Below are positions 1 through 34,699 of a stretch of DNA of 64,000 nt, one piece after another. The stretch's first letter is position 1; each line of letters opens with the position of its first letter. The notes beneath the pieces are model-generated. The model did not search any database and was not told the origin of the DNA. It saw nothing but the letters and a program-made list of their open reading frames with translations. Position numbers and translations under genes: made by a program. Source of the DNA: Tubulanus polymorphus (taxonomy: Eukaryota > Animalia > Nemertea); NCBI RefSeq assembly GCF_964204645.1, contig NC_134035.1, positions 1,984,001 through 2,048,000 of the forward strand, written 5' to 3'.

Positions 1-145
1 CAGAAATTTCAGGGTTTTTCCAAATACAGATATAAAACTTGTCTCTTGTTTTAATTATAATATGATCTCCTGTGTTTAATGTTTGCTACTGAATATGAAA
101 TAATGCAAGAAATTCATGAATTCTCTTCTTTTTTTATTGCGACAG

Positions 146-151
146 AATTCA

Positions 152-183
<32 letters not shown>

Positions 184-2963
184 AAAAACGACAGCACCAG
201 AAGTAAGTGAGAAGTTTTCTGTATCATGGAATTTCTAGTCGTGTTTATTTCTTTCTGACAGACGATGATTTGTTTGTGATTTTCATCGTATATTTCATAC
301 CGGGAACAAAGTCATGAAAATAATCCTGCTTTTAATGAAATAAATGCCCGTCACTTAGAATTATTTTATAATCAAGTTTTTTTTATATAATATTAGCGCA
401 CACAGTAAAATCTGGAAGCATTTGCTCACGGATATATGTGCATATATTTTATGTATCTCTTTTATTGATGTATTTATATTTACTGTATTTAATGTGTGAA
501 CGTGAAATAACAAAACTAAAATGAATTCTCTTTTTTTCTTTCATGTCATCAGCGTAAACAAACAGCAGCAAAGGCAGTAAGTATTAATTCTTCTGTTACC
601 TTGAAACAACCGATTCTTATGAGTTTTTCAACAGAATTATCATCAAAATTACAGAATTTAATCGGAGTTTGATTCCCTTCGTAACTTATCGTTTTTGACC
701 TGAATGTGAATGTTATTGTTCTTTTCTAACAGCCAGAAGTCCTGGAGGAAATTCCGCCGCCAGTAAGTTTAGATTTTATGATATCATTTTATATAAACCT
801 GTTTTGTTTAACCTGGTCCTCTGAAGCCGGTTAGACTGGTATTATGTTTAACCCGTGCTCAGTTAACTGAATTCACTTTTAATCAAGTTAACCCAGATTT
901 ATTAAAGTAAACATTGGTCTCCATAAAACTGGCGCTTAGATTCATTGATCATTTAATGAATGATTTTTATAGATATGAATGTTAATTCTCTTTTCTAGAT
1001 AACAGTAGAAGCGGAAATTCATTTTGTAAGTTTTCTATTAATCTCCTCGGTGGAATATGATATCTACCATTTTTGCTGAGAGTCATTGAAACTTCATAAC
1101 TCTTTAAGCAAGTTGTAACTGATTTCGTCTTCAGTTTGTGCGCGCGCTCACTTACACATACACTTATATTTGCGCATGTAGTTCATAATTATCATCAAAC
1201 TCGTAGTAACAACGATAATAGTAATGATGATAATTACAATTGTCATTTTTAAAGTGCAAATATCCCGATGAAAGGAATTATCAAACTGATTTATCACGTG
1301 GTGTTTTTGGTTTTCTCTCATTGTAACAAGTTTACTCTGATGAAATCTTTTTCCAGATATTAAACCTGTCTGGTATTCGTTTTAATAATGATCTCTGTTA
1401 AATGTGTGCTACTCAATATGAAATAACAACGCAATTAATTACTATTCTTTCATCGCGACAGTTTGCTGCTGCTGCAGCAGCAGCAGCAGCAGCAACGACA
1501 ACAGAAGTTTGAATTTTTCTGTTTCATGGACTCTATATCGTTTGAATCAAACTGTAAAACAAACGAATACAGAAATATCAAAGTTACAGAGATCAGAGTT
1601 TTAATGCAAGAAATTAATGAATTCTCTTTTCTTTTATTGCAACAGAACAGACAAACAGCGACGAATACAGTAAGTTTGAATTTTTCTGTTTAATGGACTT
1701 TATATTGTTTAAATAAAACCCTAAAACAAACGAATACTGAAATATCGAGGTTTTTCCGAATACAGATATAAAACTTGTCTTTTGTTTTAATTATAATATG
1801 ATCTCCTGTGTTTATTAATGTTTGCTACTGAATATGGAATAATGCAAGAAATTAATGAATTCTCTTTTCTTTTATTGCAACAGAACAGACAAACAGCGAC
1901 GAATACAGTAAGTTTGAATTTTTCTGTTTAATGGACTTTATATTGTTTAAATAAAACCCTAAAACAAACGAATACAGAAATTTCAGGGTTTTTCCAAATA
2001 CAGATATAAAACTTGTCTCTTGTTTTAATTATAATATGATCTCCTGTGTTTATTAATGTTTGCTACTGAATATGGAATAATGCAAGAAATTCATGAATTC
2101 TCTCTTTTTTTTATTGCGACAGAATTCGACGACGACAAGAACAACAGCACCAGAAGTAAGTGAGAAGTTTTCTGTATCATGGAATTTCTGTGGTGTTTAT
2201 TTCTTTCTGACAGACGATGATTTGTTTCTGATTTTCATCGTATATTTCATACCAGGAACAAAGTCATGAAAATAATCCTGCTTTCAATGAAATAAATTCC
2301 CGTCACTTAGAATTATTTTATATATCAAGTTTCTTTTATATAACATTAGCACACACAGTAAAATCTGGAAGCATTTGCTCACGGATATATGTGCATATAT
2401 TTTATGTATCTCTTATTGATGTATTTATATTTACTGTATTTAACGTGTGAACGTGAAATAACAAAACTAAAAGGAATTCTCTTTTTTTCTTTCATGTCAT
2501 CAGCGTAAACAAACAGCAGCAAAGGCAGTAAGTATTAATTCTTCTGTTACCTTGAAACTACCGATTCTTATGAGTTTTTCGTCAGAATTATCATCAAAGT
2601 TACAGAATTTAATCGGAGTTCGATTCCCTTTGTAACTTATCGTTTTTGACCTGAAAAAAGGCGGCTCTAAATCCAATTCGGTTACAGATATCAAACCTGT
2701 CTATTTTTGGTTTATTTGTATTGGTCATCAAATTCAATTCTTGGCGCACATTTTTATGCCCATAAACTGGTGCTGATTTTCATAAGCGCAACGATTGAAT
2801 AGATTCCGACTCGTTTTTTTCTTTCGCCTGGTAGATTTTCTGCAAAACAAGATGATGTTTTCCATGGTCGATTTACCAATTCCTAGGCTTTGTATTAATG
2901 AATTTTATTCTTTTACAGCATCACACTGGAACGAGGTCCACGTTGGCGTCCCCAGACATCGAA
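146..2963 (+). CDS. Micro-exon cluster 1 (10 exons): NSATTTTTTTTTTKTTAPE / RKQTAAKA / PEVLEEIPPP / ITVEAEIHF / FAAAAAAAAAATTTE / NRQTATNT x2 / NSTTTRTTAPE / RKQTAAKA / HHTGTRSTLASPDIE
   Basis: 24-57 nt phase-0 exons flanked by AG and GTAAGT. 1462-1506 has a weaker GTTTGA donor. Block 1-~704 is duplicated at ~1975-2655, and 1646-1669 is duplicated at 1884-1907. Confidence 0.75.
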
Positions 2964-5900
2964 GTAAGTTTAGATGTATCCGTTCTGTTGGCTGGTTATC
3001 AATTGTAATATGTTGAGACTTGAGATGAAAATGATTTGTATTGTGTTAGTACATGAGGTTAAAGCCTGTTTTTTGTTATGCCGTGTGCGGGGAAGGCAAA
3101 ACACAAAACGCCGAACATGTCGTGTCCGTTGAACATTTTATTGTTTGTGGGCAAAACGTGTTCTGAAAAGTGTGTTTTCTGTTTTGGCGAAACAAATGTT
3201 ATGCCGGTGCGGCGGGCTTAAGGCGAGTGAATAATTAGGGTATATGAGAAAAAAAGCGGGAATATAAATGAAGAACATTCGTAACTCTTTGCCTGCCACG
3301 CCTATTTTTCAGGCAATGCTGCGTTTTGCCAGGATTTCCGTGTTTTTCAGAGATTCATAAAACAAAAACAAGAAGAGATATCTTCTCGTCAAATTTGTTT
3401 TATATCTTTGATCTGGTCTTGCATTTTCATGTAAAATAAGCGGCATTTCTTCTAAGAGTGATAAAATCTGTAGCGATAACCAGTGCAGAGGGAGTATTTT
3501 GCAGAATATATGCTCGTTCATGCGTGTTCAGCCCCCATTTCAATAGATGATGTCACTCGCACACTGTATAGAACAACTGATGAGTTTGTTTAGTAGTAAA
3601 AGGCATTAAACTAACTGGTGTTGTGCGATGAATTCGCCATCTATCGTTAGAGTTAAGAACCAAGCCAACCGTATCGGTACGGTTTTGAGTTAAGAATCAA
3701 GCCAACCGTATCGGTACGGTTTTGAGTTAAGAATCAAGCAAACCGTATCGGTACGGTTTTGAGTTAAGAAACAAGCCAACCGTATCGGTACGGTTTTGAG
3801 TTAAGAAACAAGCCAACCATTTTGCCAGTACGGTTTTGGCAGGAATGTGATGGGAGATAACTAACATACGAGTACGTGTTTGGGTGGAAATGAGTTAAGG
3901 AGCCACGTCGGATCAACCCACCTCCCAGTATATATCATCCAAGGGCATAACTCTTTCAGCACTCACGGGTGATTTGATAAAAAAAAACACTCAGAGTGCC
4001 CATCATTGGTAACATAAAAGTAGGAAAATCGATAGAAACTTTCGAGCTCCATAGAGTGAAAACTGTAAGAGATGAGCTTAATGTTAATTGAAAGGTTTCT
4101 AGGGTATGACTGACCCTTAGAAAAGATTGGTAACAATTTTTTGAAAAATGATCTAATTTGCACGAATTATAGCTCTTTTTAAGAGCCTCAAAACGCTAAG
4201 CGTTGTTTAAGAGACCAGAGAAAAACATTCGACTAAGAAACTCTGTCGTCACAAGGGTTTGAACCTATAAACCTTGGATTGACGAGACCAGTGACCGGCG
4301 GCTTAGTCCACTTGGCCACTGCGCCTCTCCAATTAATTATAGCTCAGCGACCAGTTTATTTGCTAACTCCTTAAATTTCAGGTATAGGATAAACAACCCA
4401 AGGGCTTAACGACAATTTATTGAAATGTCGTTTTTGAGATGCTCTCACGATTCAATCTTTTGATGCAATTTTTTGGTAATTCGACTGTATTATTTAACGG
4501 GAGGGAGTGTTAATAGCGAAGCAAATATCGCAACTTTTTTGATGCCGTAAAAACCGGAATTACAACGATGTTCATATACATTCATACCTAAGCGTTATTT
4601 AAAACAGGTTCTCATAGGCGTCCCCAGGAATTTTCATACGGGGTTCGAATAAGCATCAATCCAGCATCCAAGCACAATGTCTGGTGTTTGGGGGGCCTCC
4701 CCCAAAAAACTTTTTTTTAAATTTGAGGCTTTAGAGACGTTTTCCAGGCTCTAAATGAATCACTTAGAGTTAAAGGACTTAAGTCAAATTGGCAAGAAAA
4801 ATCTTGAACATTGATTACATGTTAACTTGAGAAGTTAGCTATCTTGAAAAGGGTCCGCTACCCCTGCACCCCTCGGGGACGCCTATGGTTTTGTGTGAGT
4901 CAATGTGCGCTACGTCATCAACATTGGAGCATTTCAAAATAACAATTACAATTGTGAATGTTCGCTTATCCATTTTGTAATATAACGCTTGCCAGTGGTC
5001 CGGTATCACTCCCGAACTCGCTTCCACCAGCCCCCTGGCCTCATGAAGCGTGATTTCATTACTGGCGCTGTTGCGCGTGACGTCATATATCGATTTGCGA
5101 AATACTTCCTTGTTCGGTAAAACGTTCGCTGATTGGTCTATTTAACGGGAAAACCAACATAAGTCTACTGACGGTTTGTTACAAGCGCTGTGATTGGTAC
5201 GACCGGATTCTGGTCGGCTAGTAACGACTCCAACGACTCGTGAGGTCAGGGGGTTCGGGGAACAGCTTTAGCGTAGTGGGTTCGAATCCCTTGACAGGTG
5301 AAGATTTCAATATTGAAGCATTTCAAAATAACAATTACAATTGTGAATGTTCGCTTATCCATTTTGTAATATACAGTGTTGCCACTTCTCCAGATTTCTC
5401 CGGAATTCCGGATTTAAAAAAAATCCAATTTCATTTCCGGATTTTCGGGAGAAGTCAAATAACCACAAAAGAAAACATCGCGAAAAAAATAAAATCAATT
5501 CGGGATTCGACCCTAAACATCAAAACGTGACGGCTCCGTAGAGGGTTCGAAAAAGCCGTATTGTGCTGCCACGTAGTGGCAACAACCCCGCGCGCAGTAC
5601 ACGATTAAACCAAGATGACGCGACGATCGAAATCGACTGACGCTTCGTTTGTTTTTTGGCTCTGGTTTATATATGAGGTGTATTTGCCGGAGCCAATTGC
5701 TATTTGAAAAAAAGATCTATAGGCGGTAATGAAAGTGAGGCCTATAACGCGTATTGCGCCAGAACGCATCTCCTGGCGTTCTAATTTAAAAAATTTTTTT
5801 GGGGGAGGGCCCCAGACCCCCGACTTATTTTCCGGATTTTTAGCTTCACATAAGTGGCAACTCTGAATATAACATATTTCATTCTGTATGTTTTCTGTTC

Positions 5901-8900
5901 GATAAATTTTATATATGTCTTATTGGCAATAGACATTTGTGTACCGGTATTACCTCGTTGATATATCGGGGCTAGAGACTAGAGATTTTGCCGGTCAGTT
6001 CAATTCAATCATCGATATATTCAAATTCAACATATATTTATTGATCCTGCTAGTAGTCACACTGATTGACTACCCCGACTCATCGGACGGAACAGGAACA
6101 CGGAGAACTTGAAGAATAAAGATGTAACTGACATACGACAACACTGCTTTCGTAACTTTCATTCCTATGAAAGGAAAATACAGAATTCGACCCCGATTAA
6201 TTCATATATCGTCAATCGTTGACAAGCAATTCATGTGTCATTCAAGGTGTCAATAAACACCTCTTTCAGTTTTCCTCTAATTGATATTTATGGAGATGTA
6301 AAATTTTTCATTTATATTTCAGGAAATCGAAACAGTTTTCGAATTAAAGTTGGGGACGTCGCTCAGGGCCTCGTTCCAGAAGACGCTGACGCGAAAACAT
6401 CCGGTAATGTGAAAAAGATTGATTTCAAAGGAAGTGCAGCTTACCCTAGGGGGAGCCACTTTGATTACATAAATTAAACAGTCAAAGGGTGAAAATGCTC
6501 TATACATTTTGTATTCAATTCATTACTTTCACGTTAAAATGACTTTGGATATAACGACTTATCTAGCTATTTGTTAGTTTTATTATAAACCTGAGAATTC
6601 CGTCCAAAATAAAACATTTTAATAATTTCATATCGATTATAAACGAACAGATTACTGAAATTCATTGTTGTATATAACGAGCTTTCAGTGAATGACGTTT
6701 ATTTCTCATCACTTTCAAACTGCTACTGATTTAAAATGCTCATACAGTCTCTTTTGTTCTCTATTTACAGCAAGTGATCGTAGATACGCCGAGAGTTCAT
6801 GCCATTGTGGTAGTTCGTGGGCCGAAAGTAGCAGTTGACAACTGCTACGAGTACGCCCACGAACTACGCGACCGGCTCGTCGCGCAGGAGGTAAGAATAA
6901 TAGTGTTAATAATATCCATACTTGATTATGACAACTATAATATGAGAGTATATTAATGTTTCTTCGGTTGTGGGGGCCATCTAATCTTACTCAGTGTGTG
7001 CAGTCCCAGCATCATCCAGCCTGCAATCCTCGGTGCGATATAGGGCACACGTTAACCCCTATTGAAGGATGTCATCGGCGGCCATCTTGAATTTATTTTT
7101 AGCGCGACAAAGCCTGGACGAACTTTGGTTATCGCAGTTAGTCGACTATTTGTGAACTAAGTGCAACAGAATGTCAGTTATGACTATAGTCAGAAATGAT
7201 CGACTGTGGTATTGAGCACGGTCGCTGTAGTTCGGACTTCATGATTCCAAGATGGCTGGAATATGTTTCGACTGAGCTATCGCGCGTTCAGTGATTTCCA
7301 ACCATTGGTCGACTAGCTACGAAAAACCAAAGTTTGCCCTGTATTTCTCGATGGATTCCCGTGAAACTTCGCTTTAAGACGGCTAAGCTTAATTCTTTCG
7401 AAGTCAATAACAAATTAAGTAAACTCTGTCGTTTTTTACGAAGACTGCAACATTCTTTACCTGTCTTCCAGTTGTTGCCACTTTGCTAAGTTTTAGTTTC
7501 TCCTCATTTTAACAGCTCAGCTGATACCAAACAATCACACAATAATTTCTAGTTTATCGTCGCCGAAATTTCTATTGTTGATTACTCTCATCACTCTTGA
7601 AAATAGAAAAAGAATTTAATTGAATCGTTTTTATTTAATAGACTCTGAAAGAGAAGAGAAAAATGGAAGTAAGTAAATTCTTTCGAATAATTACAGGCGG
7701 ATTTAGGTCACACAGTTACTGAGTCTGTAATAACAAAACTAAATAAATTAATTCTCTTTTCTTTCCAGAGGGAAAGGAAAAAAAAAGCATTAGAAGTAAG
7801 TTTGAATTTGTCTGTTTAATGGACTTTATATCTTTTAAACCGTAAAGCAAACGAATACAGAAATATCAATTTCAAAGTTACATAAATATCAGAGTTTTTC
7901 CAAACATAGATAAAAAACTTGTTTTTTGTTTCTTTTGTTTTAATCAAGATATGATCTATGTTTAATGTTTGCAACTGAATACGAAATAACGCAAGAAATT
8001 CATGAATTCTCTTTTCTTTTATAGCAGACGAAAGCAGCAGCAGCAGCAGCAGCAAAAACAGCAGCAGCATTTGTAAGTTTGAAGTTTTCTGTATCATGGA
8101 CTTTTTTGTCCGTCTGTTCATCTCTCCATCTGTTCACTTGCGACATTTTCTATGATAGTGACGAGTTTCAAGGTCAACGGTTTTTGTATATTTTCACCAG
8201 GGGGCGTTGAATATCAAATAAGTCTGATTATCAAGCGTCCAAATCATTTTTCGCGTGGGATTGGCGACTGGACCACAAGTTCATTGATAATATTAACCAA
8301 CAGATATATGTAAACCAATGATCATCAAATAATATAACAATCGATTCTTAAAGAGCTTTTCATCAGAATTTTGTCAAAAGTTACAGAATTTAATCTGAGT
8401 TCGATTCCCTTCAAAATGATTTACCATGTGGCATGTTTGATTTTAACTTAATGTAAGAAATTTATGCTAATGACATCAAAATCATTTTTCAGATACAGAC
8501 ATCTATATAAACCTGTCCAGTTTTTATGTCTACTGTGTTTATTAACGTTTGCTGCTGAATATGAAATTTAAAACAAAACTGAATTTTCTTTCTTTTATTG
8601 CAGCAGAAACCAAAAACAACAGCTGCAGTAGCAGCGGCCGTTCCTGCACGAGTAAGTTTCTATTTTATAATTACGATTTTATGATTACGTTCATTTCTCT
8701 AACCGAGACCGAAACTTCTCGCACCTTACACTTTACATCCCTATTTCGTTATCTGGTATAAGCATTTCATAAGGCTGTGGTAAACCTCTTGGCCTATGGG
8801 CAATTATTTTTTGCGATTTTCATCGATTTCCAGACACAGATATTAAACCTGCCCAGTTTTTGTGTCTACTGTGTTTATTAACGTTTGCTGCTGAATATGA

Positions 8901-11900
8901 AATATAAAAAAAAAACTTACTGAATTTTCTTTCTTTTATTGCAGACGAAACCAACAGCGGCAGCAACAGCGGCAGCGGCCATTCCTGCACGAGTAAGTTT
9001 CAATTTTATAATTAAGTGTCATTCGTTTCCCGTGTATTCCCTCGTAGATGATCCTGTCTTAACATCAACTTTAATCCATTAGCACTCAGGAATTGCACTT
9101 AACTTAATGTAATATATTTATGCTAATGACATCAAAATCATTTTTCAGATACAGATATCTATATAAACCTGTCCAGTTTTTATGTCTACTGTGTTTATTA
9201 ACGTTTGCTGCTGAATATGAAATATAAAACAAAACTGAATTTTCTTTCTTTTATTGCAGCAGAAACCAACAACAACAGCGGCCATTCCTGCACGAGTAAG
9301 TTTCTATTTTATAATTACGATTTTATGATTACGTTCATTTCTCTAACCGAGACCGAAACTTCTCGCACCTTACACTTTACATCCCTATTTCGTTATCTGA
9401 TATAAGCATTTCATAAGGCTGTGGTAAACCTCTTGGCCTATGGGCAATTATTTTTTGTGATTTTCATCGATTTCCAGACAGATATTAAACCTGCCCAGTT
9501 TTTGTGTCTACTGTGTTTATTAACGTTTGCTGCTGAATATGAAATATAAAAACAAAAACTTACTGAATTTTCTTTCTTTTATTGCAGACGAAACCAACAG
9601 CGGCAGCGGCCATTCCTGCACGAGTAAGTTTCAATTTTATAATTAAGCGTCATTCGTTTCCCGTGTATTCCCTCGTAGATGATCCTGTCTTAACATCAAC
9701 TTTAATCCATTAGCACTCAGGAATTGCACTTAATTTAATGTAAGATATTTATGCTAATGACATCAAAATCATTTTTCAGATACAGATATCTATATAAACC
9801 TGTCCAGTTTTTATGTCTACTGTGTTTATTAACGTTTGCTGCTGTATATGAAATATAAAAAAAAAAACTTACTGAATTTTCTTTCTTTTATTGCAACAGA
9901 AACCAACAGCAGCAGCACCGAAGGAAGTAAGTCAGCATTTTTCTGTTGTATCATGGATTTTCTGTCGTGTTCATTTCTATCTGACAGCCAATGTATTTCA
10001 TACCGGGAACAAAGTCATAAAAATTCTCCTGTTCGTTTTATTAAATAACGATACAGAATCAAAACAATATCTATAACGAGGCATCCGTCGCTTAGAACTC
10101 ATTTATTACGTATATTGATACCTACGTGTGCTACTGAACATAAAATAACAAAACTAAAATAATTCTCTTTTTTTCTTTCATGGCATCAGTGCAAACAAAC
10201 AACAATAACAACAACGAAAGAAGTAAGTTTTGGCCATGTTTTTAGTTTTCGCTCATCACTGACATTACTGATATCTTTCCTCGCAGTCTTAAATCGGCTC
10301 CACTCAATTTCTCTCATGAAATGCTTTCCATGATCGAACTACACGTGATCATGAACTTGAAAATGAAAAATGATTAAATCTAAATGTTGCTCGTTTATTT
10401 TATAGGTCACCAGAAAGCGACGCCGATCCGTCGACGAGGTCAGTTTGAATTCTATCGAATCGTTCTCCCGTTATTACTTTCAATCTGTCTTTTCGTCCAT
10501 AGATAGGATCTCACAATCGCCAGTGGTATAGGCATTGTTCAGCAATTCAAGGGTGCTAATGTCCTAGAAAACCTGGCAATCTCATTGAATCAGAAAGATT
10601 GGGGAATTTGATAGATTTTTACCAAAATCCTGGTCCGTCGGTCGGTCCGTCGGTCGGTCCGTCGGTCGGTGATGTTCACGTCTCTGCACCCACAGCTTAT
10701 GGTTATTCATGAAGACTTGACCATTATTTCCTGTTTTAAGTCGTGTAGATTATTATCATTGTGGTTCAATATAGATTACGACTATCTGAAAGTTGAGATT
10801 TACTAAAGAAATGTGTATCAAAATTCTGAATGTTGATTTCAACTTTTTTTAAAATATTTTACAGCAACCCGTAAGCCCGCCTAAATGTCGGCGAGAGGAG
10901 GTAAGTTTCAATTTCATTAAATCATTTTCGATATCGATGTTAAATATTGATAACCTTAGCCCTGTTTCATAGACTGTATATCAATAATACCCTAGAGGTA
11001 TTTCTTCAACCTGAGCCCGATTTTGTAAACCGGATATCAATGTTACCCAGAGTTGCCAACCGTTCCTGATTTTCGGTATTTGTTACTCTTTTATGACAAG
11101 AAATACTGATTTGATTTGTTCGATGCATATGAGAAGTATGAAAGATCTAACTGAGGGTCTTACTGTTGATTACTGATTGATTTGAACATTTATTTTCATA
11201 TTACAATTTGTTACTGATAGCACTTTTCAGAGGTTGGCAGCCCTGTTGGTTGCCGATAGGTAAATCTTCAACATAGGTGACAACTTCATAATGAAAACCT
11301 TGGTAATGACTGAAAAATTTCGAAATGATCCCAGCTGGTATTATTTTTTCCCAACATCTATGAAACTTGGCTCTGGTGAACGCCTAGCCTCACTGGCAAG
11401 CAATTGTGATACTATCGTGACCATATGTCACTTGTGATCAGTAAGTGTCATTTACCAAAAACATACGTACATTTTATCGTAATAAATTTTTTGTATTCTT
11501 TTTTATAGGACATCAATTTATTCGACGACCTTTGGGTAAATATCCTTTTGATCGCCTACTCGTTCTCAGTGAATTTGGAGCCATCCCTTTCATTAGTGGG
11601 TGGCTCCATATATACTCGCTTTTAGGGTTAGCTAGAATTTTTCATGATATTTCATGTTATTTTGATTACTAGAATGATGATTTCCCAGAGCCGCCGCCGC
11701 CGGAGCCCGAGGCTCCTACCATTATCGTAAGTTGTAAAAGATAATTATTTTCGTAGTTCACCAGATTATTATAATCTGATATTGATTTTCCTGCTGAAAT
11801 ATCCATGTTCTAAGAGATCCCATAGCATATCTCCACCAAGGTCAAACTTGGCTAAAGCTACGACCAATTTTGCTCGTAGGCTAAAGGCACCTAGTTTTTG

Positions 11901-14900
11901 CTAGCTTATTTGTTGTTGGAAAACATAAACACTGGTAATTGTGACCGATCTGTTTGCAGCGCTGCAGCCGCTATACGGTATCATGGGTTCAATTCTAAAA
12001 TGTCATTACTTAGGGGCAGTTCCGTGGGGGGCTGGTGAATTTGGCTATATTCCTTAAAGATATTTTTTGCCTGACCGCTGCAGCTGCCGCAGTTTAGGGG
12101 TCCTAACCAATAAAAATTTTGAAATATGTTCTAATTTCCTTGTATCTGGGACATTCTGTTGGATCGAGTTACTTTAAAAAAAAAATGTTATTCTGACTAT
12201 ATTCCGGAATACAATGGAATCTAGTTTGGATCGGCTACTGATTAAGCTATATAGAGTAGTATCTTCGGTCCTAAATTAATCACAGCTGAAGCCAGTTATA
12301 TCTAAAGAGTGTTTGAAAGTAGTCGCACTCGGTCACAGTTTGTATCGATGCGAATATTCATCTTACCGAGTTCATATTATTCGTAAAATTGGCATTGATA
12401 ATAGCGTGAAGCAATGTTTTTAAGTGAAACTAAGAATGTTTAAAAGTTGCGGCTCGGTCACAGTTTTGTATCGATGTGAATATTCTTCAGACTGAGTTAG
12501 TAGAATATTGAAATCATGTCACGCAGCATCCATCGGTTCAATTATCCTCAAAATAGTCTCTAAATTGAGGGTCAACTAAGAATTTCGATCATGGAATCTT
12601 TCATCCGTGGTATAGTTATTCAAAACTTGATTTCAGAATTTTTTTTCTTTACATTTCTAGGAATCGGAAATCGCGCGTATTGTGCAAATTGACGTAAGTT
12701 TACAATAGACAATTTCAGTTACACATGTTGACACCCAGTGACTTTATAAATACCACCTGCCTGCCATCTACTGACAAAAACTTGAACTTTATTCCATAAT
12801 GTACACTATACCGTTGTGGTTCTCATAAATCCGATCATTAGTAACAACCTATAACGTAATAATAACTATTTTTGATGGTTCACCAGATGAGGCTTTTTCT
12901 TAAATAGCTTGGTTTACGGGAACCGCCTCCCGAAATTTGAAGAAAAGTCAAACAAAAGTAGAATTTTTTTTTTACTCCCATCTGTGGAACAAATTCAGTG
13001 GAAAACGAGCAAAAAAGTTTTTCACCTTCGCCGAATGAGAATCCCGGCTTGAATGATGAAAAAATTGAAAAACGCACGTTTATTCTTTTTTTGATCACAT
13101 TTGTGTGCAGAATTCGAACTTTCCAAGGATCATTGTTTTGGACATATGTATATTGCCCTATCGATCGTTCCCTCTTCCTTCAAAAACTGTGTTTATCGCG
13201 CTGAGCGAGTTCTTTTTTTTTAAATTTTCCGAAATGATATTTCAATAGTCTACCCTGTCAACCAAGCTATTAAAAAAATGCGAGATTTGAGATAATTTAT
13301 TCTGATTTTCATAAATGCTAAATTGAGCTCTTGTTTTTCTTTTTATGTAGAGAAATGAATTCCACACGTGCGTGAATGTGCCGGTAAATATTGTGAACAT
13401 TTCTATTGAATTTACAGTTGAACACAAACGACTGCAGATGAAATATGTCTGAATTTTTGTTGACGTCGTTAAACTAAAGTTGATTTTTTATTTTATAGAA
13501 GAGGAAGCTCGAGGTACCGGCATCGGTGAGTTTGAATTTCATCAAATCATTTTACAGTCCGTTCGTCTGTGTGCCTGTCTCTCCGTCTGTCCGCCTGTCT
13601 CTCCGTCTGTGTGCCTGTCTCTCCGTCTGTCCGCCTGTCTCTCCGTCTGTCCGCCTGCCGACGGGATCTTGTGAAAGTTTAAGCTTACGACAAGTATGAT
13701 TTGTGATTGCGACGAGAGTTTGTCGATGCGAAAAAAAGGCACAAGATTTTCGCGATGGTAGTACGTGCCTCTTGTGATTGTGGAGAGCTTGTTGAAGCCC
13801 TTTTTGCAAGTGGTGTTGTCGTTTTTGCACCCGCAGTTCATGGTTATTCATTTCCATTTTTTAGTTGTGTAGATTATCATTTTCGTGGCTCACCAAAGAT
13901 TATTAAGATAATCTGAAATTGAGATTTCCTTCAGAAATATGTTTGAAAATTCTGGATGTTGATTTCAACTTGTTTTTATTTTATAGGACCCCGTTAGCCC
14001 TAAACGGGCACGCGTCGGACCGGTTAAAGTAAGTTTGATTTGAGTCAAATCATTTTAAGTGAAGCTAATTTCAAATAAGTTTATTGATAATCTGGGCAGG
14101 GTTTTATAGACCATAGATCATTATCTCCTAGGGGTAAATCCTCAACCATGGCCCGATTTCATAGACCGGGTTTCAATATTGCCCCTAGCGGTAAATCCTC
14201 AACATAGGTGACAACCACCATTGTAACAATGATAAACTATGGTAAAAACTGACAAATTTTTAAATGTTTCCAGTTGTCCGAGCGTTCAAACCACTTTTCA
14301 AGTGATTTTCGCGTCTCTGCACCCACAGTTCATGGTTATTCATGAAGACTTGACCATTATTTCCTGTTTTAAGTCATGTAGATTATTATCATTGTGGTTC
14401 ACCAATGATTATGAGGATATTTTATTGTTTTCAAAATCTGCATCGGAAAAAGAATTAAAATAGTGTAGAATTCTTCTGCTTTGGATCTCGTGGCACCAAA
14501 AAATCGAAACCAAAAAAATAAAAATACCTAATTCTGGGGCGGCGGGACAGGGAGAGATCTAGAAATTGATGACAATCGGCTTGATGACCATCGCACGGAA
14601 CTAACTTAATATCATTGGCTGGAAAACTAGGATCCAGCATCGGTATCTCTTTACTAGATCATAACTTCAAACTGTGGAACTGGGTCCAGAACTGCGGAGC
14701 CAGGTTCTGTAACTGTGGGACTGGGTCCAGAACTGCGGAGCCAGGTTCTGTAACTGTGGGACTGGGTCCTGAACTGTGGAACCAAGTTTTATTATATTAA
14801 ATTGAAATGAATCATTTTCATGTTTTTATAACCAATGGAAATATCGTTTTTTTACTTTTTAGACTGAAACACCTGCGACGCCGCCGCCGCCGCCGCAAGC

Positions 14901-17900
14901 TGATGTAAGTTTGAACTATAAGTGAAAATAATTATAATGCATCAAATACACTGAATGTGTTGATCATTACTGACACGTCAATGAACAGGAAGACATACAG
15001 AATCCCTGAATCTCTCTGGTCCTACTGAGCTATTCACATGTAGAATCCCTGAATCTCTGGTCCTACCGAGCTATTCACATATAGAATCCCTGAATCTCTG
15101 GTCCTACCGAGCTATTCACATATAGAATCCCTGAATCTCTCTGGTCCTACCGAGCTATTCTGATACCGAATTCTCCAATCAGTAAGAAATCATTTAATGT
15201 TTCGATGATTTAATCAATGTTGATTGTTTTGTTTTTTCCAGAGAGACGAGATACCGCCGCTGAGGCGATCGCCGCGGCTGAGACGCCGAAGAGTAAGTTA
15301 TTAGAGCCCTTGCGCTGTCATATATTCAGGTGAAAACTACTCAAATTAGAGATATCAAATAGTCCGGTATTTTTAACCGTAATGATATGATCCAGTGCTC
15401 ACTATTAATACAATAAGAGATGCGCGAAAAAATATCGATGCTCTAATTTGACGACGACTTGTCGCACTTCTTGTTCACTTTCTGTCCCATTAGATTGTCT
15501 CACATACCTAAGCGGTGCCATCTGAAGGGATAGCTGGCGTGCCAGTTCCCTACTGTTCAAATTTCATTAAAGCGATGATGAAAGGATTATCCAATGGACC
15601 GGAACTGCTATACATAAACGCCGAATGTACTATAAAGAGAAATCAAGAAAAACTTTGAAATTGTGATTTCTTGGTTTGTTTGGAAACTTTGCGCTGCATT
15701 AGTTGAGCTCTTGAAATGCTCTTGTTTGCAGGCTCTCTTTCAGCTTTTGATTTCATATAGGGAATTGGCCCCATTATCTCTCTAATTACGATTCGTGTTA
15801 TCGAAACGCTAGTAAAAACTGCGTGAATTTTGACAAATTTTGTTGTTGTTTTCTTAAACCTTAACATCATGATTGTTATTATATTATAGGCAGAAAATGC
15901 AGCTGCCGCCCCCGCCGCCCCCGTCGATGCGACGGAAAATGGTAAGTCTACACATATTCATGATCCTATTTAGATATGTCCGTTTGTAGCCAGACATTTT
16001 TAGCAGAGCTGCCCAAACTGTTACTGATTTTCGGTATTTGTTACTATTTTATGACAAGAAATACTGAATTTGTCTCTGATTTGAACAGAAATATGAAAGA
16101 TGTTACTGAGCGCCTTACTGTTGATAACTGATGATTAATTTAGTTAACTGTAACTCACAACTGTGGAACTGGGTCCTGGATCCCGAGTTCAGAGTTAACT
16201 TTAACTCGTAACTGTAGAACTGGATCCTGAGTTCAGAGTTAAATCTAACTCATGTGTGGAACTGGATCCTGAGTTCAGAGTTAACTCTCGCAAATGTAGA
16301 ACTAGATTCTGAGTTCAGAGTTAACTCATTTGTGGAACTGGATCCAGCACGTTAAAATTCCCATAATCATGTCACTCCTGATGGAGTATGGCGGCAGTAT
16401 AACGGACTTTGACTGTATTGTCCACGTCGTAAAACTCCTATTGATCGTCCATGATTTAATGAAATACTAATAATTTTTCTCATTTATTTATTTTACAGTC
16501 ATCGAAGAGATAAGGCGGAATATCGCCGCGGATCCGCGGTACTTACTTAATTTTTTGACGCGATGTAAGTACAACTTTTTGCATTTATACTCTCTCTTTC
16601 CACTGATCACATCATTTTTCACATAATTCACACATAATTCCTGATTATTCCTGAAGATGACTATTAGGATATAGTCGAAACGTTGAAATAAACTACTATC
16701 TCGAAGTTTCATTTTCGGACTTTTTATTATCATTGTGGGATTCTCTCCTCATCGCGTCAACACGGATAAAGTGTTCTACCAATCGTGAACTTTCGCGTAT
16801 TGATAAAGCGATGAGTCGGCTACAGTTCAATCGGGAAGTGTCGACGAAATTGAAGCACGGTTATTGAGGAGTAACCACTAGCTGATCCTCGCTTGCCACA
16901 GTAACGCAGCCACTGCCTCATCAAGCCCCGGGTCTTATTGACGGTACATCCTAGAAATAATTGAAATCGAAAAACGAGATCATTGTTCCCCTTACAGAAT
17001 TCTGTATAACAAAAGCCTATTTATTTTCGTGCGGCGTCAACCATTTTCAGACACATCGTGAAATATCAGTAACTAATGATACACCGCGCCGTGGTGTAGA
17101 CGCACTGTAGTGCTATTCCCGTTATTCAACACACTTGGGTGGAATTTTTCAAAATTTTCAAATTATCTCCAGCACTATAGGGTATTGATCAGTCAGCACT
17201 GAAAGGGTTAATAAGATAAAAAACCAACTTTATTTACAAATTAAAAGAATTCTAAAATCGAGAATTTATTTATGGAAACAATCTAAAACATAAGAACACG
17301 ACGTTTCGATCTCACCCTAGAGATCATCGTCAGGTGTGAGATATTGACTAAAAACGGATTAATTATATATATAATTAGTAAGTAATTAGTGTTTGGCAAG
17401 GCATGAAGTAATATACTCCATATACCATATGTCGCTCATTGTTTTAAACACATACCGCATCAAATTTGGTTTAAATACGACCAGTGAAACCGCGCGGTCT
17501 GAATAAACCATCGTTTTTGCATCCATTTTACGCTGTTAATTGAAGCATTGCCAAAAAAGTCTTCTTGAACTGATTTGAATCAGAGAAAATAGACTGCATT
17601 TTATGAACTAGATCAATTTTAACAAGTTTCCATGCCTACCATTTAGAATTATTTTCAAATCATCATGAATCATGGTTTGCGGTTATGGCAGGGGTTCACC
17701 TGATGGTTAAGTGATGGTTCGCTGATGGTATAACACCTATTTATTTGTTCATGTGACTGAACAATACAATGATACAATGTTTAGTTACTTCTGTGCTGTA
17801 CTGTAGTAACCCTGTCCCGACAACCCCTAAACTCTCAACCAGCCCATCAATGTCACTCATCGAGACTGATATTGTATTCTTTCCGCATCCCACATTCTGC

Positions 17901-19341
17901 TGCATGATGATGTCACAAATTATTGGCAACCAATCACGCTTCAAGTGGAAAGTCAACCATTTTGTATTAATGAGATTACTAGCTACACTGGGTTCACTGT
18001 AAATCTACAAGGGCTGAGCCAGGATTTTTGGAAGGTTTACTGAAGGGCACATGAGCACTCGTGAAGGGATGAAAGGGGTCTTAAGTGTTTCTCTCCAGAA
18101 AATTTTGAAATTTTTTTGCCCGAGGCTATTCGATAGCCATCATCAGGGAATACTTGATATTTCTTTATAAAATGGAAAAAGAGAAATTCCTAAAATATCT
18201 TGAGGGCACCTCAAGATATTAAAGGCGGGGGACTGGATCCGCCCTTGATATATTAATTGTTTCTCCTGATTGTTAATGTATTTCTTTCTATTTTATATTT
18301 TACAGTGGAACCAATATTAATTGAGACGGTGGAGGATGGTCCGGAGGACGTGAAAGAGGCCATAGACCTCTTTCACTTGAACCTTGGTCCTGTCTTGGAT
18401 GACCAGCTGGCAGACCCCGTTCCAGCTGCTGCCTCCCCGGATAGGCGCCCTAGGCAGCGGACCCTCCGGCAGCCGCACCCTCTTGCACAGAGGTGGTCCC
18501 GTCGCGTGGACGGGCGGCTGTGGGAGGGGGAGTTACGGGAGGTAAGCATCATCTCAACATTAACTGTTTTTTTTATATTTCTCTCAGTTTTGATTTCGAA
18601 TGAATTTCTCTCACACGAACAGTTTTTATGAATCACTTATAATATCTTTTCTTTAATAATACTTTCATTTTCAGCGAGCCATCGTCATTTTTTTTTTTGC
18701 ATTATTTTCTAACCCTTTAGAATATTGTTTCCCAGATCGCGACGATTTATCTCTTTGTTTATATGTAATCAATTGTTTCATTATTTCAGCTCGGTTACTG
18801 ATCCGAAAATTTTCTGTAAAAAATCACTTTTCAACCGATCATTTAGTAAATGAATGTTTTCTTTTTTTTGCAGACGGGCACGCGCACCGCTCGGCATCGA
18901 AGACGACGCCGTCCGGCGGTTCGTCGCGGTGGTGTGGCGCCTCCCGAGGGGGAGCGACGCGGTGGCGGAGGGGAGGAGATCGACGTCGTGGTAGTTCCGG
19001 AGGTGGTGGAGGCGGTGCCGGTGCCGGAGCCGGTGCCGGAGCCGGAACCGGTGTTTGAACCGGTCCCGGAGCCGGAGCCGGAGCCGGAACCGGTAGAAGA
19101 GGAGATGGTCGTGGAGGTTGAGGAGGTAAGAGGGGTTCCTCCTGCCCCCGTGGAGCCGTTGGCCGCTGCCCCGGTTTCGGCGCTGGACAGAGTTCTGTCC
19201 AGCGACCGATGCCGCGCCGAAGTGCGGGTGGTGGCTCGCGGTTCCGTGGGACCGTGGGAGGAGCTTCTATCTTCGGATAGATCAAAGGCTCTTTTACATG
19301 ATTTAAAATCGGTCTTGTTTAGGCGTGGGTACAGGGAGTAG
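146..19341 (+). CDS. Multi-micro-exon gene (5'-truncated by the window), ~676 aa visible, predicted largely disordered, probably nuclear protein of unknown family
   Basis: 34 exons, each with a polypyrimidine tract+AG and a GT donor (mostly GTAAG): 146-202, 553-576, 733-762, 999-1025, 1462-1506, 1646-1669, 1884-1907, 2123-2155, 2504-2527, 2919-2963, 6323-6403, 6771-6890, 7642-7668, 7769-7795, 8025-8072, 8604-8651, 8945-8992, 9260-9295, 9588-9623, 9900-9926, 10190-10222, 10406-10438, 10865-10900, 11509-11535, 11673-11726, 12661-12693, 13499-13525, 13987-14028, 14863-14904, 15242-15292 (all phase 0, 3n long), then 15890-15941 (0/1), 16499-16564 (1/1), 18306-18541 (1/0), 18874-19341 (TAG). Joined length 2031 nt, one frame, no internal stop. 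Exons are generally GC-richer than the introns. Confidence 0.85.
3648..3838. repeat. 37-bp tandem minisatellite (GAGTTAAGAAxCAAGCCAACCGTATCGGTACGGTTTT) x~5
   Basis: Direct tandem copies visible in an intron. Confidence 0.9.
4240..4330 (-). mobile_element. tRNA-derived SINE head (degenerate)
   Basis: Minus strand A-box-like AGTGGCCAAGTGG and B-box-like GGTTCAAACCC; no convincing cloverleaf. Confidence 0.5.
4613..4887. mobile_element. MITE with TIR CATAGGCGTCCCC / GGGGACGCCTATG
   Basis: Perfect 13-bp terminal inverted repeats, no ORF. Confidence 0.75.
5374..5865. mobile_element. MITE (hAT-like CAG termini) with 6-bp TSD AATATA
   Basis: TIR CAGTGTTGCCACT / AGTGGCAACTCTG; AATATA at 5368-5373 and 5866-5871; an un-inserted copy of the flank at ~4931-4986 has a single AATATA. 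Confidence 0.85.
6323..6403 (+). CDS. Exon EIETVFELKLGTSLRASFQKTLTRKHP (first half of putative KH-like fold)
   Basis: tttatatttcAG acceptor, GTAATG donor, 81 nt, phase 0. Confidence 0.75.
6771..6890 (+). CDS. Exon QVIVDTPRVHAIVVVRGPKVAVDNCYEYAHELRDRLVAQE (second half of putative KH-like fold)
   Basis: ctctatttacAG acceptor, GAG|GTAAGA donor, 120 nt, phase 0; overlaps ORF 6774-6956. Confidence 0.85.
7642..10222 (+). CDS. Micro-exon cluster 2 (9 exons): TLKEKRKME / RERKKKALE / QTKAAAAAAAKTAAAF / QKPKTTAAVAAAVPAR / TKPTAAATAAAAIPAR / QKPTTTAAIPAR / TKPTAAAAIPAR / KPTAAAPKE / CKQTTITTTKE
   Basis: 27-48 nt phase-0 exons, all AG...GTAAG. A ~650-bp two-exon unit is tandemly repeated across ~8450-9900. 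Confidence 0.8.
10406..15941 (+). CDS. Micro-exon cluster 3 (10 exons): VTRKRRRSVDE / QPVSPPKCRREE / DINLFDDLW / NDDFPEPPPPEPEAPTII / ESEIARIVQID / KRKLEVPAS / DPVSPKRARVGPVK / TETPATPPPPPQAD / RDEIPPLRRSPRLRRRR / AENAAAAPAAPVDATEN
   Basis: 27-54 nt exons in AT-rich introns with canonical splice sites; nine phase 0, the last ends in phase 1. Confidence 0.8.
11048..11245. mobile_element. MITE with TIR CAGAGTTGCCAACC / GGTTGGCAGCCCTG; partial second copy at ~16004-16135
   Basis: Imperfect TIRs; internal CTGATTTTCGGTATTTGTTACT...ATGACAAGAAATACTGA shared with the 16 kb copy. Confidence 0.7.
13556..13658. repeat. 20-bp tandem repeat (CTCCGTCTGT[CC/GT]GCCTGTCT)
   Basis: ~5 copies; source of spurious ORFs 13480-13857. 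Confidence 0.9.
14998..15160. repeat. 39-41-bp tandem repeat (AGAATCCCTGAATCTCTGGTCCTACCGAGCTATTCACATAT) x4
   Basis: Direct copies; inverted copies at ~24760-24870. Confidence 0.9.
16499..16564 (+). CDS. Exon (V)IEEIRRNIAADPRYLLNFLTR
   Basis: ttattttacAG / GTAAGT, phase 1-1, compatible with both neighbours; inverted paralog at ~24341-24406 shows synonymous changes. Confidence 0.8.
18008..18247. mobile_element. MITE-like element with CAAGGGC...GCCCTTG termini
   Basis: Imperfect TIR CAAGGGCTGAGCCAG / CTGGATCCGCCCTTG; no clear TSD. Confidence 0.55.
18306..18541 (+). CDS. Penultimate exon (L)EPILIETVEDGPEDVKEAIDLFHLNLG...RWSRRVDGRLWEGELRE
   Basis: ttttacAG / GAG|GTAAGC, GC-rich, within ORF 18257-18631. 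Confidence 0.85.
18874..19341 (+). CDS. Terminal coding exon: Arg-rich, then Glu/Pro/Val-rich (PEPEP) tail, ending ...LKSVLFRRGYRE*
   Basis: ttttttgcAG acceptor, strongly GC-rich, ORF 18850-19341, TAG stop. Confidence 0.85.
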   Translation, partial: TGTRTARHRRRRRPAVRRGGVAPPEGERRGGGGEEIDVVVVPEVVEAVPVPEPVPEPEPVFEPVPEPEPEPEPVEEEMVVEVEEVRGVPPAPVEPLAAAPVSALDRVLSSDRCRAEVRVVARGSVGPWEELLSSDRSKALLHDLKSVLFRRGYRE

Positions 19342-19479
19342 ATGAATCGTAAATGATCCAGTAACGAGGTAGGCTTGTTTGTTCACTGCTTCACTGGGTC
19401 ATTTACGATTCAACTGCTTCCTGTATCCGGGTAATCAGCAGTTCAACGAAACAGTTTTTTTCATCGGTCATGGTAGTCA

Positions 19480-20505
19480 GTTAATCAGCAGTAGTAGTGT
19501 AGTCATTCAGTCAAGTTACGCAGTCATACTAGTCATTTTTTGGTTAGTAGTAGTCACTAATTTGTAGTCAGTGACTCGTAGTAGTCATTTTGTCATTAAT
19601 AGTAATAGTATTGGTGACTCTGTAGCAGTCACTCAATCACAGTAGTCATGATCAGTAGTAGTCAGTAAGTCTTTATAAGTCAGTTGTAGTAGTCATTTTT
19701 TGGTTAATAGAAGTCACTAATTTGTAGCCAGTGACTCGTGGTAGTCATTTTGTCATTAATAGTAATAGTATTGGTGACTCTGTAGCAGTCACTCAATCAC
19801 AGCAGTCATGATCAGTAGTAGTCAGTAAGTCTTTATAAGTCAGTTGTAGTAGTCATTTTTTGGTTAGTAGTAGTCACTAAGTTGTCAGTGACTCGTAGTA
19901 GTCATTTTGTCATTAATAGTAATAGTATTGGTGACTCTGTAGCAGTCACTCAATCACAGTAGTCATGATCAGTAGTAGTCAGTAAGTCTTTATAAGTCAG
20001 TTGTAGTAGTCATTTTTTGGTTAATAGAAGTCACTTATTTGTAGGCAGTGACTCGTAGTAGTCATTTTGTCATTAATAGTAATAGTATTGGTGACTCTGT
20101 AGCAGTCACTCAATCACAGCAGTCATGATCAGTAGTAGTCAGTAAGTCTTTATAAGTCAGTTGTAGTAGTCATTTTTTGGTTAGTAGTAGTCACTAATTT
20201 GTAGTCAGTGACTCGTAGTAGTCATTTTGACATTAATAGTAATAGTATTTGTGACTCTGTAGCAGTCACTCAATCACAACAGTCATGATCAGTAGTAGTC
20301 AGTAAGTCTTTATAAGTCAGTTGTAGTAGTCATTTTTTGGTTAATAGTAGTCACTAAGTTGTAGTCAGTGACTCGTAGCAGTCATTTTGTCATTAATAGT
20401 AATAGTATTTGTGACTCTGTAGCAGTCACTCAATCACAGCAGTCATGATCAGTTGTAGTCAGTAAGTCTTTGTCAGTCAGTGACTCGGTCGTAGTAGTCA
20501 GTTGA
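19480..20505. repeat. ~160-bp tandem repeat x~6 built from AGTAGTCA sub-motifs, just 3' of the stop codon
   Basis: Landmark AGTCATTTTTTGGTTA recurs at ~19531, 19691, 19851, 20008, 20168, 20328. Confidence 0.92.
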
Positions 20506-33177: not shown

Positions 33178-34429
33178 TTTCGTAGGTCAAATTAGTTGAC
33201 TACGTGTGTTTTGCTGCTGGTTACCCTTTTTTTGCCTTCGATCTATCTGAAGATACCTTCGCCTCTTCCATGCTCTCCTCTGTCCGTGCTTCACTGCTTC
33301 TGCGCTGTTCCACGGTTTATGCTGCGGCGCTGTGATCTGAGCCTCTGTCGACTGTATGCGTCTGCTTTTGCCAGTAAGTACCCTTTTATTTTTTTGGTGG
33401 GTCCCGGGATGTTTTTTATCGATTTTTTCTCCGCTGCGGTACATTGCCAAGTCACTTTTTTGAACTCGATAAATTGGCGTGAGCCTCGGGATAACGATGA
33501 TAATTATTATCATCCGAATATGTGTTGCAGTGTTGCGACACTTTAACTGTGGACCGTTGATGGTCTTTATATATATTATTACTGATCTTTATGTGGCTTG
33601 GCAATTAGATCTAGTTGGGGGCCCTTGGACTTCAATATGTTTTGGGGGGCCCCACCCACCCGTTATAACAATGTGATGATGAGGTCAACTATATATATTT
33701 TCATCTATTTCACAATGAAATAGATTGCTAAAGGTTTACGGTTTTCCTGAAACCATATTTCATTAGCAGTTTAACTGCCATCTTATGTAAAAAGTTTTAA
33801 AATCTGATCTAATGTTGAATGCAGAGTTTTGCTGTACTCTGATATTTTGCGATGAAATAGATTGCTGAAGGTTTACAGTTTTTACTGAAACCAGATTTCA
33901 TTGAGATTTTTTTCCCTTCGATCTATCTGAAGATACCTTCGCCGTTTTTTACTGAAACCAGATTTTATTACGCAGTATAACTGCCATCTTATGTAAATAG
34001 ATTCAATAATACAAACTGACTTAATGTTTAGATCAGTTGTAACTGAGGGCGTAACCTTGGTATTTTTACTGTACATGAAAACATTCCTGTGAAGAAATGT
34101 TTTACCCTGTTAACTTTTTAATATTGATATCGCGATAAACTTATTGATATCGCGATAAACTTGTTCCTCTCATATTATCACATTTTACCCGCCCAATATA
34201 GGATTCTTGTTTATTTGGTTCAGGGATATACCACGGGTTAGTTGAGGGATTTTTATGCCGCAGTGGAGCTTTATTGTAATCATAAATGGTTTTTGTTCGA
34301 TTATATTTCGTAAAAGGCTTTACCCGGACCATCCTTTTACTTGTCTCGATTCGTCGTCGTCGTCGAACCCGGATCCGCTACCATCGCGATATTCCGCTTA
34401 TGATCGTTTACGTTTTGATTAAAGTAGCG

Positions 34430-34620
34430 ATCGACTGGCTCTGCTATCATTTACCGTCAACGCGCGGTGGTCAACTGAACCTAATGTCAACTCACCGCGT
34501 GATAAACTGGCTCTGCTATCATTTACCGTCAACGCGCAGTGGTCAACTGAATCTACTGTCAACTCATCACGCGATCGACTGGCACTGCTATCATTTACCG
34601 TCAACACCCGGTGGTCATCT
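34430..34620. repeat. ~72-bp tandem repeat x3 (ACTGGCTCTGCTATCATTTACCGTCAAC...) preceding the 29-bp array; one copy again at ~42195
   Basis: Direct copies. Confidence 0.8.
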
Positions 34621-34699
34621 AACCCTGCGATCAACTCAGTACTGTCAACTCAAACTGCGGTCAACGCTACTCTCAGCTAAATGTCGACTCAATGGTCAG

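Follow-up and report, generated by a model that had tools for sequence, protein, structure and literature searches.

Can a reading frame that is broken into exons of a few dozen nucleotides each be told from chance, and if so, what kind of gene would it make? The question is raised by the plus strand of positions 146–19341 in a 64,000-nt stretch of the genome of the nemertean Tubulanus polymorphus (contig NC_134035.1, here C11:1984001-2048000, in a 268-Mb, 77-contig assembly; henceforth the window, whose coordinates are used throughout), where a previous reading of the sequence alone had described a hidden gene of ~30 symmetric phase-0 micro-exons. We consider it likely that the region holds most of an intact 42-exon protein-coding gene, with a disordered and probably nuclear product, belonging to a multi-copy family that has so far been seen in this genome alone.

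The window has the base composition of AT-rich eukaryotic DNA (~37% GC), and neither a tRNA scan nor an Rfam scan of its 64 kb returned a match. Along the plus strand of 146–19341 lie short GC-rich segments bounded by strong polypyrimidine-YAG acceptors and GTAAGT donors. A strict detector of such exon-like units (at least 14 pyrimidines in 20 positions, YAG, 15–130 nt, GTAAGT) found 23 of them on the plus strand of positions 1–19400, 22 with a length that is a multiple of three (3n) and 20 open in frame 0; it found none on the opposite strand of this interval and three on both strands of the other 44.6 kb. In a scan with a position weight matrix, open 3n pairs numbered 37 on the gene strand and 0–1 elsewhere, while the opposite strand had none. 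The dense run of phase-0 micro-exons is confirmed as an observation.

Within the window the model comprises 31 exons and 626 codons on the plus strand, fewer than the 34 exons and ~676 residues that had been claimed before. Twenty-seven exons are in phase 0 and 3n long (26 of 24–57 nt and one of 120 nt), which upholds the architecture of the sequence-only reading and 27 of its 30 symmetric exons. The last four (52, 66, 236 and 468 nt) have mutually fitting phases (0 to 1, 1 to 1, 1 to 0 and 0 to stop) and, just as had been described, join the micro-exons in one frame that is closed by a TAG at 19339–19341.

Since duplicated exons and exons built on triplet repeats receive 3n lengths for free, the test against chance was limited to 16 exons with no relationship to one another and no microsatellite basis. 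All 16 are 3n, for which the probability by chance is ~2e-8. Frame 0 is open in all 38 phase-0 exons of the full model, compared with 27 and 29 for the other two frames. Tandem repeats that carry accidental splice-like motifs were ruled out as an explanation, given that unrelated unique exons share the architecture and that the frame is constrained.

Position 146 is not where the gene begins. Eleven further exons extend up to 3.25 kb to the left of the window, and the sequence-only reading had rightly pointed upstream for the start codon: the ATG lies at C11:1980748 (L009:6748), in an exon (L009:6744-6771) that reads AAAT-ATG-GCT-CCA-AAA-CGA-AAG-CAG-ATA before gtaagt and encodes MAPKRKQI, with A at -3 and G at +4. 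The full model spans ~22.6 kb from this ATG to the TAG at 19341, with 42 exons (37 of them of 57 nt or less), 38 of which are consecutive, in phase 0 and 3n long. Its coding sequence of 2,232 nt, or 743 codons, has its sole stop at the end. Past the stop codon, beginning after 190 nt, there is a 160-bp tandem repeat (19530–20481; six copies at 95% identity), each unit of which bears a donor-like motif, cagtaagtct.

Gene copies and substitution pattern

The 3' kilobase of the gene occurs in eight places at 98–100% identity (the window copy included) and in one more at 92%, giving at least nine copies of the 3' end that are 92–100% identical. The duplicated block reaches at least from -10 kb to +30 kb around the gene, with 93–99% identity including the introns. 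The last part of the window (58.6–64 kb) repeats the DNA that precedes the gene by 15.5–20 kb, and the distance to the next copy downstream is 81.7 kb; the tandem unit is therefore ~80 kb long (79–82 kb). The ATG exon and the context of the stop codon are alike in five copies. On the minus strand of 24270–26210, 5–7 kb downstream, part of the gene recurs in inverted orientation, with a splice-site-flanked exon for RDEMPLRRSPRLQRRR (24624–24671), a 42-nt fragment (24423–24464) and a 45-residue piece of the signature exon (26076–26210; for this exon see below); as this relic accompanies every gene copy, it belongs to the duplicated unit. Beside the 92%-identical copy on C8, C8:13952466-13956831 (L014) holds a cluster of pieces of the two terminal exons arranged in tandem, some of them interrupted by stops; the 3' end seems to have been re-duplicated here locally and in fragments.

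Duplication is also visible inside the gene. Its 5' third consists of ~3 repeats of a six-exon cassette (PEVLEEIPPP, ITVEAEIHF, F(A)nTTTE, NRQTATNT, NS(T)nAPE and RKQTAAKA), and an exon-plus-intron unit of 238 bp is tandemly repeated and still 96% identical. About 20 linker exons between -2005 and 10222 have homologous intron flanks, with "...gaattctcttttcttttattgcaacag" upstream and "gtaagtttgaatttttctgt..." downstream, whereas the flanks of the motif exons from 10865 onward are unrelated. Between paralogous copies the number of linker exons varies (e.g. from two to six exons of the KP..PAR type), as do their lengths, always in steps of three; in the motif exons NDDFPEPPPPEPEAPTII, ESEIARIVQID and RDEIPPLRRSPRLRRRR no copy differs from another. 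The 40-residue piece encoded by exon 6771–6890 has 95–100% protein identity across 11 copies. Modular diversity demonstrably arises in the DNA itself, by differences between copies in cassette number and triplet length.

Five copies, that of the window and four others, were mapped exon by exon. All 26 exon length differences among four copies are 3n, without a frameshift, and none of the five copies contains a real frameshift or stop; the single stop that was flagged sits in the repeated linker block, where orthology mapping is unreliable (AA/GT splice-site flag). The ratio of nonsynonymous to synonymous substitution rates (dN/dS, Nei-Gojobori) was 0.28, 0.20 and 0.34 in three comparisons (p = 3e-4, 6e-4 and 0.03), which use one common reference copy and related copies and are not independent, so that the p-values are indicative only. 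The 213-nt tail that follows an internal GT at 19125 has 0–1 changes per close copy, against 5–7 changes per 400 nt just downstream of it in most close copies, and in the 92% copy it shows five synonymous changes versus one nonsynonymous. The TAG is retained in all nine 3' ends (the window and eight others). Together with the substitution pattern of the tail, this settles the 3' end as the read-through model; an alternative end at the in-frame donor 19125 was rejected, since past that point the tail changes in the manner of coding sequence. Despite the raw rates discussed below, the substitution pattern between copies is that of coding sequence, and a start codon, a stop codon, intact copies and dN/dS below one bear out the coherent gene that had been proposed. 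Synonymous divergence from the C8 copy (0.059) is about twice the divergence of aligned introns (0.026); exons have 56% GC and introns 35%, with a CpG observed/expected ratio of ~1.1 in both. Alignment bias or gene conversion may account for the synonymous excess.

When the 78-residue exon (18306–18541) was searched against the genome in six frames, more than 40 further loci with open frames appeared at ~50% identity. These distant loci are found in regular arrays, with a spacing of ~33 kb on C6 and ~45 kb on C3, and also on C8, all of them within ~3 Mb of contig ends. Three of them were compared in sequence. They have the C-terminal signature in common, with the invariant pattern P..P.AA.P...P.Q....QP.P.A.R.S.RV.GR. 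Their starts are of the MPKA type and NS-T(n) micro-exons are present in them too, although their micro-exons are fewer. Open frames at this level of identity indicate that the family is old and maintained.

The predicted product and its possible relatives

The predicted protein is rich in A (18%), P (12%), T (11%), E (10.5%) and R (9%) and has little cysteine (0.5%). Disorder-promoting residues make up 73% of it and F/W/Y/C 3%, with a grand average of hydropathy of -0.54 and an isoelectric point of 7.7. As the sequence-only reading had noticed, one exon is roughly one peptide module: Thr/Ala linkers, basic patches and acidic-hydrophobic motifs map approximately one to one onto exons. There are five basic regions (nine overlapping window hits), and the basic patches KEKRK, RERKKK, SPKRARV and RRSPRLRRRR stand on exons of their own, as do the acidic-hydrophobic modules PEVLEEIPPP and NDDFPEPPPPEPEAPTII. 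The N-terminus, MAPKRKQI, is followed by acidic residues, and the maximum 19-residue hydropathy within the first 60 residues is 1.23; judged by this hydropathy, with no dedicated predictor, there is no hydrophobic leader or start resembling a signal peptide. When the two largest exons were modelled singly with AlphaFold, confidence was low (predicted local distance difference test scores of 59 and 64), the exceptions being a helix at the C-terminus and, at the family-signature end, a beta-hairpin.

The invariant exon 15242–15292 (IPPLRRSPRLRRRR) contains the only occurrence of RRSPRL, a motif that is retained in every close copy and in the inverted relics. The pattern RRS.RL appeared in 16 of 20,000 composition-matched shuffles. 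Cryo-electron microscopy has shown that HMGN (RRSARLSA) and the tardigrade protein Dsup (PPRRSSRLT) bind the acidic patch of the nucleosome through the arginines of R-R-S-x-R-L, with the second-to-last Arg as anchor, an interaction that AlphaFold 3 models poorly (PMC12487698). Like these disordered nuclear proteins, the predicted product carries the core, and like Dsup it is lineage-restricted and Ala/Thr-rich; no overall homology is apparent and the likeness appears to be one of motif. Vertebrate HMGN proteins have ~100 residues, with a nucleosome-binding domain and a C-terminal regulatory domain, and the predicted product differs from HMGN proper in overall size and composition. Because of the lack of a signal-like start, the basic clusters resembling nuclear localisation signals (NLS) and the invariant RRSPRL exon, the product is probably nuclear, in agreement with the non-secreted, nuclear character that had been suspected, and may be a chromatin-associated disordered protein that binds nucleosomes through RRSPRL. 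The exon that encodes NDDFPEPPPPEPEAPTII (11673–11726) also reads ...RRRRSPRL... in its +1 frame, which is probably a by-product of the CCG/CGC-rich codons common to both exons.

All homology searches were run with single exons, so that a relationship visible only at full length could have escaped them. Pfam returned nothing except Pro/Glu-repeat noise, a protein search with the last exon matched only low-complexity bacterial linkers, a protein atlas search gave no usable match and a PDB sequence search came back empty. With the 78-residue exon, an exhaustive HMMER search against 1.84 billion representatives produced two matches, both translated tandem repeats. The family, known so far from this genome alone, appears to be undescribed.

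The previously noted similarity to schistosome micro-exon genes (MEGs) holds for architecture. In both, most of the coding sequence lies in symmetric micro-exons (3–81 nt and multiples of three in MEGs) between longer terminal exons, and the genes are multi-copy, lineage-restricted, spread by duplication and overlooked by automatic annotation (10.1101/2023.06.21.545858). MEG proteins, however, are secreted and have an N-terminal signal peptide, while the start found here does not resemble one and NLS-like clusters are present; MEG products reach ~190 residues from 10–20 exons, as opposed to 743 codons from 42 exons; and MEG introns extend to 5 kb, against a median of 337 nt. Alternative splicing is established for MEGs, and searches with the larger exons, taken singly, detected no sequence similarity to them. 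By these features the gene resembles schistosome MEGs in architecture only and is not a member of that family. Another parallel is provided by the aphid bicycle genes, lineage-specific families of single-phase micro-exon genes with sequences too divergent for homology searches, among them megacycle, with more than 100 micro-exons and ~2000 residues (PMC9168663). Large lineage-specific families and many micro-exons of one common phase are found in both cases, but bicycle internal exons are almost all in phase 2 (PMC9168663), not in phase 0 as here. Bicycle proteins are salivary effectors that are secreted and have signal peptides and paired CYC motifs, and neither feature is seen in the predicted product, with its 0.5% cysteine.

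Elastin, collagen and the PEVK region of titin are examples of disordered-protein genes made of symmetric exons. Such genes tend to be assembled from phase-symmetric exons through internal tandem duplication (PMC3632108), and our gene has the same phase-symmetric exons, predicted disorder, internal tandem exon duplication and one exon per module. It differs in degree, with 38 consecutive phase-0 exons, many of them on triplet microsatellites, and with the whole gene amplified as ~80-kb units. The family itself appears undescribed, as the sequence-only reading had ventured, but its design carries a known principle (PMC3632108) to an extreme.

Weighing the explanations

The following steps are likely to have produced this gene. 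Each micro-exon would encode one bead of a disordered protein built like beads on a string. Some beads would be Thr/Ala-rich linkers on triplet repeats, the others short linear motifs. The linkers, which make up about half of the exons, probably derive from one splice cassette that was tandemly duplicated together with its intron flanks, after which triplet slippage would alter the length of linker exons in steps of three. Short introns and GTAAGT donors would let the spliceosome recognise such tiny exons by intron definition, and the whole gene would then have been amplified as ~80-kb tandem units.

Several points weigh against an intact, expressed gene with a nuclear product, apart from the common reference of the dN/dS comparisons and the single-exon scope of the searches. 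Three exons of the sequence-only reading were not reproduced, a looser scan yielding one weak candidate (13351–13383). No canonical polyadenylation signal (AATAAA or ATTAAA) lies within 2.5 kb of the stop. On 13400–19399, one doubtful RNA run gave no contig and the other three runs were genomic, with joints that are repeat artefacts without AG/GT logic. The raw substitution rate of exons equals or exceeds that of introns, and the copies are young, so their intactness could reflect too little time for decay. As for the motif, RRSxRL is absent from the three distant family members, and in RRSPRL the place of the HMGN Ala and the Dsup Ser is taken by Pro, with RRRR following instead of S/T.

Some of these points would be expected of a young duplicate that is silent or decaying, the array being a relic of segmental duplication that looks intact by virtue of its recency and is not expressed as protein. 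The missing transcript evidence and polyadenylation signal, the exon substitution rate and the lack of a homolog outside this genome all fit such a relic, and triplet repeats yield 3n indels without any selection. A relic would hardly, however, show nonsynonymous changes significantly depleted (dN/dS 0.2–0.34), a C-terminal tail that in most copies has changed less than the non-coding DNA next to it, five exon-mapped copies free of real frameshifts and stops, 3n lengths in 16 of 16 unrelated non-repeat exons and family members still open-framed at ~50% identity, and we regard this explanation as very unlikely. Even less credible, to the point of being nearly dismissible, is a secreted or extracellular repetitive protein like elastin, mucins or MEG products, with O-glycosylated Thr-runs or cross-linked Ala/Lys exons and a signal peptide on an undetected upstream exon. 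The ATG exon does have an acceptor, which means that there is at least one more 5' exon; Ala/Lys and Thr-run exons recall the cross-link modules of elastin and the modules of mucins; and one poly-Ala window reaches a Kyte-Doolittle value of 1.9. On the other hand, the ATG stands in a strong context directly after the acceptor, and in distant members the offset of the MPKA... start from the acceptor is 3 nt versus 4 nt, which means that the bases upstream are not a conserved coding frame. The charged first 60 residues with their low hydropathy, the five basic regions, the RRSxRL motif and the scarcity of cysteine also argue for a non-secreted product.

The sequence-only reading had itself gone further than an intact gene, to combinatorial splicing, i.e. 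the skipping of arbitrary subsets of exons to give many isoforms per locus as in schistosome MEGs, the central exons of which are alternatively spliced (10.1101/2023.06.21.545858). Skipping any phase-0 exon would preserve the frame, as would skipping any subset of the 38, and exons correspond to modules; skipping itself is an architectural possibility. Three weak GTTTGA donors (exon 1462–1506 and two upstream exons) and four NAGNAG acceptors would allow some variation and are the likely variable splice points. Yet phase symmetry is adequately explained by tandem exon duplication and triplet slippage, and diversity is already present between copies in the DNA. Furthermore, GTAAGT donors (35 of 41), strong polypyrimidine tracts and short introns (median 337 nt) usually mean efficient constitutive splicing. 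Because of the consensus donors and short introns, most micro-exons are probably included constitutively, by intron definition, and combinatorial splicing seems unlikely to us, if less so than the two explanations above.

An intact gene that diversifies between its copies remains our preferred explanation. A broader proposal, of which we are more doubtful than of combinatorial splicing itself, is that the family is a large one of orphan disordered chromatin proteins in which interchangeable micro-exon linkers and motifs for binding nucleosomes or partners are tuned by exon skipping within a gene and by rapid cassette and triplet turnover among dozens of tandem copies near chromosome ends, as a nuclear counterpart of the secreted MEG and bicycle families with an acidic-patch anchor of the HMGN/Dsup type. 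Uniform-phase micro-exon genes are rare, and the products of the well-studied ones (schistosome MEGs and aphid bicycle genes) are all secreted proteins that interact with a host. If a third independent origin with a nuclear-looking disordered product were true, the architecture would be a general route to modular disordered proteins and not a speciality of parasites. Should the RRSxRL exon bind the acidic patch, the family would join the "untapped realm" of chromatin binders similar to HMGN and Dsup (PMC12487698). The locus displays its birth process unusually clearly, from the tandem duplication of a splice cassette around a triplet repeat to the ~80-kb amplification of the whole gene. Gene finders based on open reading frames (ORFs) will miss such genes, and no protein of the family is present in the public sets searched.

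Exon coordinates and neighbouring features

Coding exons of the gene model inside the window, with the peptides they would encode.
Feature	Position	Strand	Length (nt)	Peptide and remarks
micro-exon	146..202	+	57	NS(T)nAPE Thr-run linker on (ACG)n triplet repeat; common splice-cassette flanks
micro-exon	553..576	+	24	RKQTAAKA
micro-exon	733..762	+	30	PEVLEEIPPP; acidic-hydrophobic motif, three times in gene
micro-exon	999..1025	+	27	ITVEAEIHF
micro-exon	1462..1506	+	45	F(A)nTTTE; candidate for skipping because of weak GTTTGA donor
micro-exon	1646..1669	+	24	NRQTATNT; within 238-bp tandem unit
micro-exon	1884..1907	+	24	NRQTATNT; tandem duplicate
micro-exon	2123..2155	+	33	NSTTTRTTAPE
micro-exon	2504..2527	+	24	RKQTAAKA
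micro-exon	2919..2963	+	45	HHTGTRSTLASPDIE
exon	6771..6890	+	120	40 residues; sole hydrophobic, fold-like piece; GC-rich island; donor GTAAGA
micro-exon	7642..7668	+	27	TLKEKRKME; basic cluster; invariant in four copies
micro-exon	7769..7795	+	27	RERKKKALE; basic cluster
micro-exon	8028..8072	+	45	Ala/Lys linker; tandem NAGNAG acceptor (8025/8028)
micro-exon	8607..8651	+	45	KP..VPAR linker; NAGNAG acceptor (8604/8607)
micro-exon	8945..8992	+	48	TKP..IPAR linker
micro-exon	9263..9295	+	33	KP..IPAR linker; NAGNAG acceptor (9260/9263)
micro-exon	9588..9623	+	36	TKP..IPAR linker
micro-exon	9900..9926	+	27	KPTAAAPKE
micro-exon	10190..10222	+	33	CKQTTITTTKE
micro-exon	10865..10900	+	36	QPVSPPKCRREE; differs among copies
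micro-exon	11673..11726	+	54	NDDFPEPPPPEPEAPTII; invariant in all copies
micro-exon	12661..12693	+	33	ESEIARIVQID; invariant
micro-exon	13502..13525	+	24	RKLEVPAS; GTGAGT donor; NAGNAG acceptor (13499/13502)
micro-exon	13987..14028	+	42	DPVSPKRARVGPVK; NLS-like, S-P-x-K/R site
micro-exon	14863..14904	+	42	TETPATPPPPPQAD
micro-exon	15242..15292	+	51	RDEIPPLRRSPRLRRRR; RRSxRL core of HMGN/Dsup motif; invariant in all copies
exon	15890..15941	+	52	phase 0 to phase 1
exon	16499..16564	+	66	phase 1 to phase 1; IEEIRRNIAADPRYLLNFLTR
exon	18306..18541	+	236	78 full codons; family-signature exon; conserved end RWSRRVDGRLWEGEL, predicted beta-hairpin
terminal coding exon	18874..19341	+	468	Arg-rich stretch, Pro/Glu repeats, strongly constrained 71-residue tail, TAG at 19339–19341

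The largest intron (2964–6770; 3.8 kb) is packed with inserted repeats and with elements that have inverted ends. It includes a 37-bp tandem repeat of 4.6 copies at 3650–3818, and parts of it are absent or rearranged in the C8 copy.

Outside the gene, the plus strand of 34286–39804 carries several long arrays of a short repeat that are open in all three frames (e.g. SVASRGRYRYQLRLVDGIAISCVSWTVSL repeated). Near the end of the window, a 172-residue ORF on the plus strand (62122–62640) matches the C-terminal portion of a reverse transcriptase encoded by a retroelement, with thousands of relatives at 50–63% identity in fish, echinoderms, corals and hagfish.

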